From NCBI GenBank assembly GCA_000320545.1, contig ADNK01002821.1:7976-71975 (forward strand): a stretch of 64,000 nt of DNA, given 5' to 3'. The position numbers and the translations under genes are program-made. The notes under the pieces are model-generated. The model did no database searches and was not told the origin of the DNA. It saw nothing but the letters and a program-made list of their open reading frames with translations. The DNA comes from Bigelowiella natans CCMP2755 (lineage: Eukaryota > Protista > Cercozoa). Positions 1 through 64,000 of this stretch are shown piece after piece (the stretch's first letter is position 1; each line of letters begins with the position of its first letter).

Positions 1-1496
1 GGCGCGAAACTACTATCTTCTTGCTCTCTCACGGCTCCGAAACCAGCGAGGACAACAAGGCGCATACGGCGATGACGAGGAGGAGGAGGAAGAAGGCACG
101 AAGATGGGGGGGGCGGAGGGAAAGGAAAGAGCTGCCGAGATTAGAAGGTGATGAGCGTCGTTGTTTTGAAGAGCATCTACTGTGTGAAGGGGAATGATAT
201 TATAACACATATGGGTACAGTATAAATATTTATATAATATATATATATATATATATATATATATATTCATGTGTGTGCGTGTGTGTGTGTTTTCCTGCGT
301 CTAGTATTTGAACAATCCTCGCATCGAAATTGGAATACCGTTATTGACACTGGCCGTTTGCTTATCACCCAGGCAGTGCCTTCTAAACCTTGCGACATGC
401 TACATCAAAGAGCGCCGTTTCACGGACGCCCTTCACTACTGCGACATTGCCGAGAAGGAGTATCACCGCGCAGGTCTGCCGCTACCCGCCAAGTTATCTC
501 TTCGCAAAGCCAACGCTTTGGAGGAAACAGGGGAGTTGAAGAAAGCGCAGAAGGCCCTTGCGAGCGGCATCAAGTCGGTGGAAGATGGCACGAACGCAAG
601 CCGCAAAGAATTGCGCTCTTTGGAAGCTGCCCGGGATAAAATCTTGGCGAAAATCGAGGCGACTGCGAAGGCAGAACGACGGAAATACGGAGGATTTTTG
701 AACCGAAAATGGGGGCCTGCAGTGAAAAGTGGGTTTCTGCTCAATAACGATGATAAGAAAAGAAAGAAAAGGCAACAACAGGAGAAGCAGCAGGAGGCGG
801 GGAAAATCGGCGAGGATAGTAAAGAGCCCATTCCGATGTAAGTAGGAAGGAGGGGGGGGGGATGTAAGAAAGCTTGCCAGCCAGCGGGATTTGCGATGAA
901 GTGTGCTGTAGTTACTTTCACTTTACCGTTATCACCCCTTGTTGCGTGGCGTCTCCTTAGGTATCCTGACAAGAATTTGGTTGGCGAAAAAACCTGCGAG
1001 TTGTGTGGCAAGAAGATGCCCTGTAAGCAGTGGGCGCGACACATGCTGAAATACCATAACCCAGATTCAACGGGTGGGTCTTCCTCTCTCTGCCCTCATC
1101 CTGTGTACTCATTGTGTTCAATTGCTTGGTCTAGTTGTTTAAAACTATCATCATGTATTGTAGATAGTGTTAATTGCACACACACACACACACACACACA
1201 CACACACACATATATGTGTGTGTATGATACTTATAAGACACATATGTGTCGAGTACACTTGTGTGTATGTGCACATATATATGTATGCATATTTATTGTA
1301 TGTGTATGTGTGTGTGTGTGTGTGAGAGAGAGAGAGAGAGAGAGAGAGAGAGAGAGAGTGGGGGGGTGGGGGAGAGAGCGTATATTTAACTTTATGCGCG
1401 GTTCATGTAGGGGACTACGAATCATCAGATTCTGAAGGCTATCCAGAAGAGTTGACTTTCCCACCGCTACCGGATGGAACGGTCATTACTTATTGA
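1..1496 (+). CDS. 3' part of a TPR-repeat protein with a C-terminal C2H2-type zinc finger (exons ~<1-147, 373-837, 961-1073, 1411-1496)
   Basis: Exon 373-837 reads RQCLLNLATCYIKERRFTDALHYCDIA..KLSLRKANALEETGELKKA (TPR-like). The apparent stop at 839-841 lies in a GTAAGT donor at 838. Splicing to 961 gives MYPDKNLVGEKTCELCGKKMPCKQWARHMLKYH (C-x2-C..H-x4-H), then a phase-compatible last exon ending TGA at 1494-1496. Confidence 0.7.
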
Positions 1497-2077
1497 GTTT
1501 ATATATTTGTGTGTGCTTGCGTGTATGCGAATGTGTATCTGTGAGTCTAGAGTCAAGCTGAATAAAGTGCACGGTACAATTTTAACTGCTGGAGGGTCTC
1601 GATCAGCTCTGCGCGGCGACGATGTAACTGGGCGCGACGAGCACAAACACATGTACATGCATGTGCATGCAGATGGCATCTCACTAGTTTGTGATGCAGC
1701 TGCAACTAGCGGATGCAAACGTGTGGCGGCTGGGACATTCGCAACATGCTAGCATGACAAGCTAGCACAAATGCCTGCATGTGCATGTACGTAGTCTGCA
1801 CTAGCTAGCACAAGCTAGCCAAATTGCGCTTCACATATGTAACGGCATAATAGACACAGCTAGACAGCAACGGCTAGCTACGATACTTGACACACACACG
1901 TACACAAACACACACGCACACACACACACGCACACACACACACACACACACATCACACCTACACACACACACACACACATACACAAATAAACACGACAAA
2001 CATGATGGAACACGTGATGCGATCTTGACAAACCTTGTTCTGTGGCTGTCATCACCATGTACATGCCACATTTGGTA

Positions 2078-61591: not shown

Positions 61592-62662
61592 ACGTTTGAA
61601 TCTCAACATTCGGTCCTGAGTTGAGTGTCCCTGAAATGAACGACAAAAATAACGAACGTCCAGGACGTTTGAGTCCTTCGTCATTAGATATGAAAATTTG
61701 TACCAATAAACCTTATTGATTGTTGCTACTCATGATTAAATTGTAACAGGCAACATACAATACTTAACTTGCATTTCGGAGAAATAGTTTAGTACTTCAC
61801 CTGACTAGCTAACAGAGGCGAGCGCGTATATATGTATGCAGCAGTCGATCGCCGTCATAATAATAATTAATAATGCGGACGCGCACATGTATCATATGAT
61901 TATGACGCACATGCCCTTACTTGTCATACGATACATGTGCATGTCACATGCTAGCATGGCGTTTTACGGCGCTAGCTAGCTAGCGAGCGATGTCGATTCC
62001 ATCGACGAAAGAATGCTGATATCACGATGCTTTTAAATACATGAAACAGCTGCTGTAGCGAGCACACAATACCTATCAATCCAATAACAGAGACAAACAA
62101 ATTCAACAACTATAGACACAGTATATATAATATATAATATATATAATATATATCATATATACGTATGTCTATTGTAACATAAGAGCTCTGTCGTAGTAGC
62201 TCTGCAGCCGCGCTGCTTTATTGCACAACTACATCATTAGGGTAACAATGCAACATTGTAGCTTCAATTGCGTTCATTCCTTCCGTCTTACACACGTGTG
62301 ACTCACATGTAGCGCAACGCGCCACACGCATGTGCATGCGCACACGCTCATCTAAGGCATTGCCATCCGTGAGAACGTACGCAGACAAATCGCGCAAACT
62401 TTCACGCCATCTCTAGATCTGCGCAGGCTGCTACGCACGTATACATGCATGCGACTACGACACGATGTGATGTACATTACCTAGATTACACAGAGCAGAC
62501 AACGCATAGATCATTTAATAATAAATGTGTCCACACGGCCTGTACGTATAATTCGCACATGCATCAACAATGACAAACGGTGCTGACTTGCAGTGGCCAC
62601 AAGACTATCTAACCCTTAGTCTACGCATCTGCCTTTCATCAGACTCAAGGCCTTGCAAGTAA

Positions 62663-64000
62663 TCATGACACCTTTGATTTGCTATCCTCCTCCTCATCCC
62701 TGGTGACAGATGCCGCCCCCCCACTGATCGAGGCCTGCGCTAAGCGCTGCTCAATGCTCTTGTCAATCTCCGCTTTGTTCTCCCCTGCTAGCTCGGAGGG
62801 GAAAGCAAGTACTTCAGAATCATCACCTGCTGTGACCTTGTGCGCGTCCACAAGTCCACTTGGAGCGGCGTTGCCCCCACCCGCCCCCATTGTTATCATC
62901 GATAGAATCTGCTGATTAGTTAGGCCATCGATCTTGCGTTTTCCATCCGCTGTCGCGCTCATCTTCTCTCGGACCGTCCTTTTCGAAGAAGCAAATAGAA
63001 AATGAGAGCAGGGCCCGTGCTAGTTGCGAACGAGAAGGCAGCTCTCTAGGTCAGTGGACAATGATAATACACCATTTAAACCGTGGTGGCTGCTTTGTTA
63101 ACATGCACCGCCGTTCATTAATGTTCTCCAAGATGCCGTCGAAAAGGGATAATCGAATACATATATATATATATATATATATATTATAAATATGCATATG
63201 AAACGATCTAATTCATCTTCCCCCTCCCATATTCTATAACCTGTTTTGTCTCAGAACCCCCCCCCCCCCGGGTATTACCTAACAAGCTCTGCTTTCTCCC
63301 TATCGCCAAGGTCTTGTGCGTATTTATGCTCCATATCAGTCCAGTAGTACTTCTCCCTAAAGCAGTGTTGGATGGCAACTATTACGACAACCATGCTTCT
63401 ACTTCCAAGTGGTTTTGAGTGTGAGGAGGAGAGAAATGGCAGCAGCTTCTAAATTATATTAGTGTTTCCTATAACACAATAATATACATATATATATATA
63501 TATATATATATATATATATATATATATATATATATATTTACGTAGAATATCGCATGAGATGCAACTACTACTACTCCTCCTCCTACTACCACCACGACTA
63601 CCATTTCTGATTTTGCGCAAACTTGATTCTGTGGCGGAAAAGGGAACCCGGTCTGGGTGTCTTATCATACCTTGCTGGTGGGGATCAGCTGAAGAACAGC
63701 AGCACTTTGATCCATGGAATAGTCCCCCCCCGCCCTCCCCCCCGTGTTTTCCACATCCGCTCTCGGGCCCGACAGGCTTTGGATCCCAAGCTAATCGCCC
63801 TCTTCTCCTTCTCGGGAGGTCCAATAATAAATGTCTCGTATTGATAAAAGAAGGTTTATTATACCGACTTTCTTCACGTTTGAGGGGGGGGGGGGGCGGA
63901 AAAAAAAAACAAATTGTAAATTTAATGACCTTGATTTTCCCTTGGCGGTAGGTACATGGGCGCTAATCGATCGATCAGGGGGAAAATCCCCTTTTCCCTG
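62663..64000 (-). CDS. 3' part of a hypothetical multi-exon protein
   Basis: ORF 62663-62962 plus exon-like pieces (EKYYWTDMEHKYAQDLGDREKAELVR at ~63280-63356) between SSR-rich introns. Confidence 0.5.

Follow-up and report, generated by a model that had tools for sequence, protein, structure and literature searches.

We analyzed a window comprising the final 64,000 nt of the 71,975-nt contig ADNK01002821.1 (C916) from the nuclear genome of Bigelowiella natans (an assembly of 91.4 Mb in 3,736 contigs), focusing on the strands of neighboring genes. The window is eukaryotic sequence with many GT-AG introns (~55-900 bases) and numerous microsatellites, and a tRNA scan of its 64 kb identified no tRNA genes. 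All 22 units named in an earlier reading made from the letters alone (the sequence-only reading) were placed in the window (Table 1), and their strand order comprises 21 consecutive switches. This order and these strands, as originally proposed, are borne out by Pfam matches, homology, family motifs, and codon margins, none of which fell on the wrong strand. The 21 switches stand, whereas the description of the window as ‘strictly’ alternating does not, given that an ankyrin array and a lipase treated there as one gene may be a tandem pair; these are listed separately in Table 1.

Strand assignment of the units

Strands were assigned through Pfam, homology, or family motifs for approximately 16 units and through the sense-antisense margins of open reading frames (ORFs; 6-73 bits) for the others. 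Pfam scans were run on single ORFs and, strand by strand, on the 150 longest ORFs, and none of these 300 ORFs revealed a Pfam family on the strand opposed to the map. TPR, Ank (in the array), Lipase_3, MIOX, GDA1_CD39, MCM (five domains), and HAD with Ank were detected only on the plus strand; Ribosomal_L21p, Ank, FA_desaturase, and DUF427 were detected only on the minus strand. Protein searches were run exon by exon, never as joined spliced models.

The codon model was trained on confirmed genes only. When genes were withheld from training one at a time, it called the correct strand for 94% of the windows of 60 codons and 96% of those of 100 codons; it performed well on soluble proteins but preferred the antisense strand of membrane proteins. 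Every map-consistent ORF in the units without homology has a positive sense-minus-antisense margin under this model (6.5-73 bits). Two other scoring schemes were set aside. Self-trained hexamer/codon scoring of ORFs was overfitted and discarded. A two-strand Viterbi gene finder, self-trained on the 136 kb of genome that we analyzed (the window and parts of the contigs C1200 [40 kb], C2800, and C300), fragmented or merged genes with the penalty setting, misplaced the strand of the desaturase and the TLC-like gene, and served solely to suggest a few starts and stops. The upstream exons and start of the L21 gene (12168) were taken from this unreliable source.

Table 1. Genes and transcribed units placed in the 64,000-nt window (scores and margins in bits, from the codon model).
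Feature	Position	Strand	Support
TPR protein gene, 3' part (continues upstream of window)	1-1435	+	ORFs 305-838, 842-1432; weak TPR_19/TPR_1; codon score 44.6, margin 76
‘Fragment’ gene or transcribed unit	2169-3539	-	Three ORFs, margins 21-60
Ankyrin-repeat array gene, or 5' part of one ANK-lipase gene	4065-5894	+	Ank_2 on 5 ORFs
Class-3 lipase gene, long C-terminal region	6481-10286	+	Lipase_3 on 7605-7976, 7907-8254
Organellar ribosomal protein L21 (bacterial type)	11450-12168	-	Ribosomal_L21p E = 3.3e-21 on 11453-11818
Small conserved protein gene, ~88 aa, three exons	13233-13647	+	P0003 match E = 2.8e-14
Ankyrin-repeat protein gene, 663-aa ORF	15286-17277	-	Ank_4/Ank_2; codon score 66, margin 212
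Na/Pi cotransporter-like (NaPi) gene, ends approximate	18206-21800	+	Weak PF02690 at 18626-18712, E = 0.027
Hypothetical gene, U-box-like by eye, ends approximate	21889-23366	-	ORFs of 266 and 157 aa, margins 70 and 72
Myo-inositol oxygenase gene, start approximate	24619-25744	+	MIOX E = 1e-102 on 25034-25741
Hypothetical Lys-rich protein gene, ATG 28074	26553-28074	-	Chain of protein-like ORFs; ORF 27760-28152, 25.7, margin 37
Apyrase (GDA1/CD39) gene, signal peptide MKSWSVIL..., end approximate	28701-33157	+	GDA1_CD39 on 3 ORFs
‘Secreted’ hypothetical gene, ends approximate	34300-37316	-	ORFs 34506-34751 (11.3, margin 14.6), 36266-36874 (margin 34.7); no homology support
TIM9/10-family small Tim gene, three exons	39492-39957	+	PF02953 E = 8e-12 at 39766-39906 (C916:47741-47881)
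Membrane protein gene, ‘AGTRAP-like’ in the sequence-only reading, ends approximate	40817-42661	-	ORFs 41065-41373 (margin 46), 41479-41742 (margin 18), 42416-42661 (margin 6.5)
MCM6 gene	42570-46376	+	MCM_N, MCM_OB, MCM, MCM_lid, MCM6_C; introns read
Fatty-acid desaturase gene, ends approximate	47804-51191	-	FA_desaturase C-terminus on 48076-48399
Membrane protein gene, ‘TLC’ in the sequence-only reading, start uncertain	51823-53731	+	ORFs 52947-53303 (margin 24), 53318-53728 (margin 52)
DUF866 (CXXC zinc-binding) gene, small exons, start approximate	54886-56257	-	By eye
HAD hydrolase-ankyrin gene, single exon	56547-57770	+	Hydrolase, HAD_2, Ank_2
DUF427 gene	57913-59419	-	PF04248 E = 8.8e-11; motif on 58799-59065, margin 31
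Membrane protein gene	60543-61591	+	262-aa ORF 60803-61588, 17.7, margin 73
Hypothetical gene running off window	62666-64000	-	ORF 62666-63019, 31, margin 34

Several assignments draw on motifs recognized by eye. Plus-strand ORFs at 18.2-21.8 kb carry what we take to be motifs of the NaPi family, such as VLGANIGTTGTALL and LFNVALALIFLPF; a PHO4 profile search of the genome returned no match in the window's contig. Plus-strand stretches at 28.7, 29.4, 30.0, 30.45, and 32.5 kb carry the conserved regions of apyrase, all of which lie between 28.7 and 32.6 kb, and the start of this gene lies near 28.70 kb, not at 30.2 kb. On the minus strand, HHTCH (50633), HNRTHH (50147), and QIEHH (48231) are the three histidine boxes of the desaturase. 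This gene extends over 47.8-51.2 kb instead of stopping at 50.0 kb, and neither this revision nor that of the apyrase start affects the gene order. Exon-sized stretches on the minus strand at 54.9-56.26 kb are taken to be DUF866-like. A PF05907 (DUF866) search returned no match anywhere in the genome, with control sequences blank as well, and a PF03798 (TLC) search of the genome returned none in the window's contig, where the ORFs of the TLC-like gene encode transmembrane-like sequence. For the names TLC, DUF866, AGTRAP, and NaPi, the Pfam match was absent or weak, DUF866 and NaPi being recognizable by eye, and ORF scans yielded no Pfam match for the AGTRAP-like or the U-box-like gene.

The small gene at 13233-13647 lies between L21 (-) and an ankyrin gene (-) and is therefore needed for alternation at this point. 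Its match to P0003 shows that the gene is real, and tblastn places its exons on the plus strand at 13233-13280, 13373-13453, and 13477-13644. The product carries a repeated LHKFHxVEVxAN motif, and P0003, an 88-aa relative, is 62% identical to it.

Within the ‘fragment’ unit, part of ORF 2437-2946 is 100% identical to a 113-aa protein (P0002), and a JGI record of 1357 nt (L013; sample 3300017184) is identical to and collinear with 2169-3525, unspliced. This stretch holds only short ORFs in differing frames, and possible identities of the unit include a pseudogene and a non-coding transcript.

Several further ORFs were considered as genes and rejected. Those at 29019-29750 (-; 244 aa, in apyrase), 20301-20963 (-), 19019-19426 (-), and 50614-51108 (+) are shadows of opposite-strand exons. 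Three more were interpreted as non-coding DNA: 46806-47255 (-) and 14194-14658 (+) in convergent spacers, and 17472-18005 (-) in a divergent one. The ORF at 3385-3876 (+) lies in the spacer from which the ‘fragment’ unit (-) and the ankyrin array (+) diverge and owes its coding score to a perfect A30 run (3780-3809).

The ankyrin array and the lipase

The ankyrin array opens with an ATG at 4065 (MGAAGAS...), a predicted start that looks like an N-myristoylation signal, and is built of 239-bp units, each with a 99-nt phase-1 exon (six in all) and a 140-nt intron. Tandem Repeats Finder (TRF) reports a period of 239 in 5.7 copies, and the introns are almost identical between units. A candidate last exon (5770-5891) runs into an in-frame stop codon at position 5892, with an AATAAA located at 5925. 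The JGI model P0001 (aug1.81_g18474, 1080 aa), which is an Augustus prediction and not transcript evidence, maps to 6481-7206, 7428-7850, 7907-8104, and 8160-10283; it begins at the ATG at 6481 and leaves out the array. These observations favor two tandem plus-strand genes and argue against a strict rule, in which every gene would have opposite-strand neighbors, the array and the lipase would form one gene, and any apparent exception would hide a small unannotated gene.

Other features of the region favor a single gene. The 586-bp gap between array and lipase has intron- or promoter-type composition and zero CTAG, and it is missing the 3'-flank signature present downstream of all other gene ends in the window, including those with spacers as short as 142 and 289 bp. 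An in-frame splice is also possible from the regular donor of the array at 5636 (ATG/GTGGGG) to an AACAG/G acceptor at 6493, joining 5636 to 6494, although a splice-pair scan indicated that in-frame pairs readily arise by chance. The gene finder split or merged the region according to the value of one penalty setting. In a search for paralogs that might reveal a fusion, the ankyrin unit was found nowhere else in the genome and the lipase paralogs were distant; metagenome contigs contained no match to the candidate last ankyrin exon (exact pattern) or to P0001 (protein scan). On this evidence, two tandem plus-strand genes have an even chance of being the correct model, while a single gene is a serious possibility that falls just short of that. 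The earlier claim that the window holds no tandem pair was thus not confirmed, in view of the array's own ATG, stop, and AATAAA and the start of P0001. The companion claim that the alternating pattern independently favors one gene is circular, and the evidence that is independent of the pattern is split.

Within the lipase, P0001 links the lipase domain to a 708-codon exon through a short intron (~8105-8160). The lipase frame closes at a TAG at 8255, and an ATG one base on, at 8259, opens a 675-codon ORF; the intron of P0001 bypasses the TAG, and its translated bridge is not protein-like. The break near 8255 may reflect an assembly frameshift or two cistrons.

Spacer composition and CTAG scars

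Spacers with usable limits comprised 11 convergent and 9 divergent examples (out of 10 divergent junctions in all), with types taken from the gene map. An order-2 Markov model classified 19 of the 20 correctly when each was left out in turn (11/11 convergent and 8/9 divergent). Convergent spacers are 0.14-1.6 kb long, most of them ~0.8-1.6 kb, and are rich in TG/CA and CTAG: CTAG occurs at 7.6/kb versus 2.4/kb in divergent spacers, and TG+CA reaches 1.40 times expectation versus 1.07 times. Sites of the form N4-CTAG-N4, in which an identical four-letter sequence stands on either side of CTAG, are hereafter termed scars. The window contains 20 scars versus 0.67 expected. Nine of the 11 convergent spacers account for 19 of them, the remaining scar falls in an MCM6 exon, and the divergent spacers are free of scars.

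A sliding scan identified 3'-type DNA (DNA with the composition of convergent spacers) at all 11 convergent junctions. Elsewhere it revealed one clear segment, in a NaPi intron (19.35-19.85 kb), and two weak ones. The ten divergent junctions measure 296, ~304, 525, 623, 631, 928, 1064, 1123, 1252, and 2176 bp from ATG to ATG; six of the ten are below 1 kb and the median is ~0.8 kb, these being distances between coding starts and not between transcription start sites (TSSs).

The NaPi intron (19351-19850) is microsatellite-rich, holds (ACT)23, and matches 3'-type convergent spacers in composition, so that the signature also occurs away from gene ends. The scar-like 12-mer TAGTCTAGTAGT at 43618 lies inside the MCM6 coding exon and, with 0.67 scars expected per window, may be a product of chance. 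Two convergent gaps are short. The stop codons of the HAD-ankyrin (+) and DUF427 (-) genes are just 142 bp apart (57771-57912), implying that their 3' untranslated regions overlap or are very short, and NaPi (+) lies ~290 bp from the next minus-strand gene.

Alternation and its interpretation

The sequence-only reading had attached a probability of 2^-21 to the observed order. This figure is invalid, because joining same-strand exons into one ‘gene’ forces alternation and because the ankyrin-lipase merge had been picked using the pattern itself. Treating the array and the lipase as separate genes gives 23 units, and the strand changes at 21 of the 22 junctions between them (binomial p = 5.5e-6 versus 0.5 and p = 2.1e-4 versus 0.6, the value for brown algae). 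At one-sided 95% confidence, the switch rate is at least 0.80, or at least 0.75 given one further hidden same-strand gene. The fraction of adjacent genes on opposite strands is therefore significantly greater than 0.5, in a count that covers the window only.

Could the window simply be a local chance run or an oddity of its contig, with gene orientation in the genome at large being ordinary? The 136 kb analyzed is a small part of the genome, and the maps of the other contigs are noisy. However, the window by itself yields p = 5.5e-6, and C1200 and C2800 show plus-strand gene, 3'-type spacer, and minus-strand gene at each junction that could be resolved, so that a local run appears extremely unlikely. 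In C2800 there was one clear junction of this kind, with a scar-bearing spacer. The order resolved in the 40 kb of C1200 is a secreted protein (+), a gene (-), a class-II tRNA synthetase (+), a gene (-), an ankyrin gene (+), and a CHD-type chromatin remodeler (+; Chromo, SNF2, and Helicase_C domains), with a scar-rich 3'-type spacer after each plus-strand gene.

Alternation might also be produced by model building, if same-strand exons or whole genes were merged into single ‘genes’. The sequence-only reading did invoke the pattern to merge the ankyrin array and the lipase, the gene finder was sensitive to its penalty in that same region, and several units lack homology. Against such an artifact, most of the large blocks are each taken up by a single recognizable protein (MCM6, apyrase, NaPi, desaturase, and lipase), and no 3'-type segment lies inside any unit save the microsatellite-rich NaPi intron. 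The nuclear genome has 21,706 genes (PMC5635652), or one gene per 4.2 kb over 91.4 Mb, and at this density random orientation followed by merging would leave one block per ~8.4 kb, or ~8 per window. We identified 22, and the density of units is one per 2.8-2.9 kb, above the genome mean and not half of it. Similarly, the 3'-type spacers at 11 junctions amount to ~0.5 per gene, which fits alternation, whereas random orientation would give ~0.75 per gene. An origin in model building is thus very unlikely.

The window is best read, in our view, as a series of 22 or 23 head-to-head paired protein-coding genes in which alternation is probably a genuine and very strong tendency, with a switch rate probably at or above 0.8 and so far higher than the ~0.6 of brown algae, and is unproven as a strict rule. 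Several observations weigh against this reading. Seven units have no homology support and depend on ORF statistics and on reading by eye. The array and the lipase are same-strand neighbors if they are separate genes. A 2.2-kb stretch, 37317-39491, yielded no gene in ORF, Pfam, and protein searches, and its best minus-strand ORF (38218-38556) matched neither a Pfam family nor any of the 62-198-aa proteins searched. A motif search of the divergent spacers detected no 7- or 8-mer common to them beyond chance. Lastly, in C1200 the ankyrin gene (27989-28894) is followed on the same strand by the CHD gene, from 31.3 kb. The 2.4-kb gap between these two contains a 3'-type segment, has CTAG scars at 29.77-29.89 kb, and shows neither a coding signal nor a detectable gene on the minus strand; the pair, judged on these features, is likely an exception to alternation.

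The composition of the 37317-39491 stretch is of the divergent class, with no 3'-flank segment and no N4-CTAG-N4 scars, and we read it as a putative long spacer on the promoter side of a divergent pair, which may contain a small unannotated gene. A small gene of this sort may also exist in C1200, where after a Kelch gene (+) a weak candidate on the minus strand (8.85-9.5 kb) lies behind a scar cluster, exactly where alternation requires one. That candidate, together with the composition of the ankyrin-lipase gap and the possible splice across it, speaks for a rule without exceptions; the CHD pair of C1200, the separate ATG and stop of the array, the start of P0001, and the ease with which in-frame splice pairs arise speak against it. 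A rule of this strictness is therefore unlikely.

The sequence-only reading had further proposed that the genome is built from divergent gene pairs that share a promoter region and are bounded by shared terminator blocks. The arrangement of head-to-head pairs and tail-to-tail spacers agrees with the layout in this proposal; the sharing of promoters and of terminators is putative, and no common promoter motif was found in the divergent spacers. As a statement on the whole genome, the proposal reaches beyond the window, and C1200 holds one likely same-strand pair.

In the arrangement that we favor, a tendency toward head-to-head pairing, every gene start would face another start across a promoter-type spacer of ~0.3-2.2 kb from ATG to ATG, and every gene end would face another end across a 3'-type, scar-carrying spacer. 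Divergent neighbors would use one nucleosome-free promoter region, at least where spacers are no longer than ~0.6 kb (five junctions). The layout might be kept because promoters would then never lie downstream of a neighbor's terminator, which would avoid read-through interference. Insertions and breaks would be tolerated mainly in 3' spacers, with head-to-head pairs traveling as units, and since an inverted (-,+) pair is still (-,+), alternation would survive rearrangement.

A stronger version of this idea holds that the genome consists almost wholly of indivisible head-to-head modules, with breaks, insertions, and excisions (the CTAG scars) tolerated only in 3'-3' spacers. We regard this version as doubtful. 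If true, shuffling or inverting whole (-,+) pairs would hold alternation near 100% without selection on orientation, and synteny with other chlorarachniophytes would break in convergent spacers and persist across divergent ones.

Preferential placement of neighbors on opposite strands is known from brown algae (Ectocarpus sp. 7, FDI clade), where the proportion ‘can be greater than 60%’ and where the intergenic intervals of divergent pairs are short and have been linked to shared nucleosome-depleted regions (bioRxiv 10.1101/2024.02.19.579948). The B. natans window resembles these genomes in having neighbors on opposite strands but differs in degree (21/22, lower 95% bound 0.80, versus >60%), in belonging to an unrelated lineage (Rhizaria), and in having 3' spacers that form a scar-rich sequence class of their own. 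The bidirectional gene pairs of Arabidopsis and vertebrates likewise combine opposite strands with close starts, and a published definition puts their TSSs within 1000 bp of each other (PMC2648788); 6 of the 10 divergent junctions in the window are below 1 kb from ATG to ATG. Such pairs are a minority class in those organisms, whereas nearly every gene in the B. natans window is paired. Convergent pairs with close or overlapping 3' ends, as in yeast and Arabidopsis, have possible counterparts in the stop-to-stop distances of 142 and 289 bp; in contrast to them, most convergent spacers of the window are ~0.8-1.6 kb and filled with CTAG-scar DNA.

The literature that we searched, which did not extend to the genome paper of Curtis et al. 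2012, contained nothing linking the B. natans nuclear genome to gene orientation, bidirectional promoters, or head-to-head or tail-to-tail pairs. Alternation in the window is far more regular than in any genome described in that literature, and the B. natans pattern is an extreme form of a known genome organization. If ~85-100% of neighbors alternate throughout this 91-Mb, intron-rich genome, it would represent the most regular orientation pattern known to us in a large eukaryotic genome. It would then offer a natural system for examining how bidirectional promoters and paired termination zones are built, how far read-through interference shapes genomes, and whether tolerated sites of DNA damage and mobile-element scars dictate gene order. 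On a practical level, B. natans gene models that are wrongly merged or split could be flagged with the help of strand alternation and of the signature of 3'-type spacers.

The density of genes is itself uneven. The part of C300 that we analyzed (11.8 kb) is nearly all microsatellite and low-complexity DNA in which no convincing gene was recognized, and gene-poor stretches coexist with dense alternating regions in B. natans.

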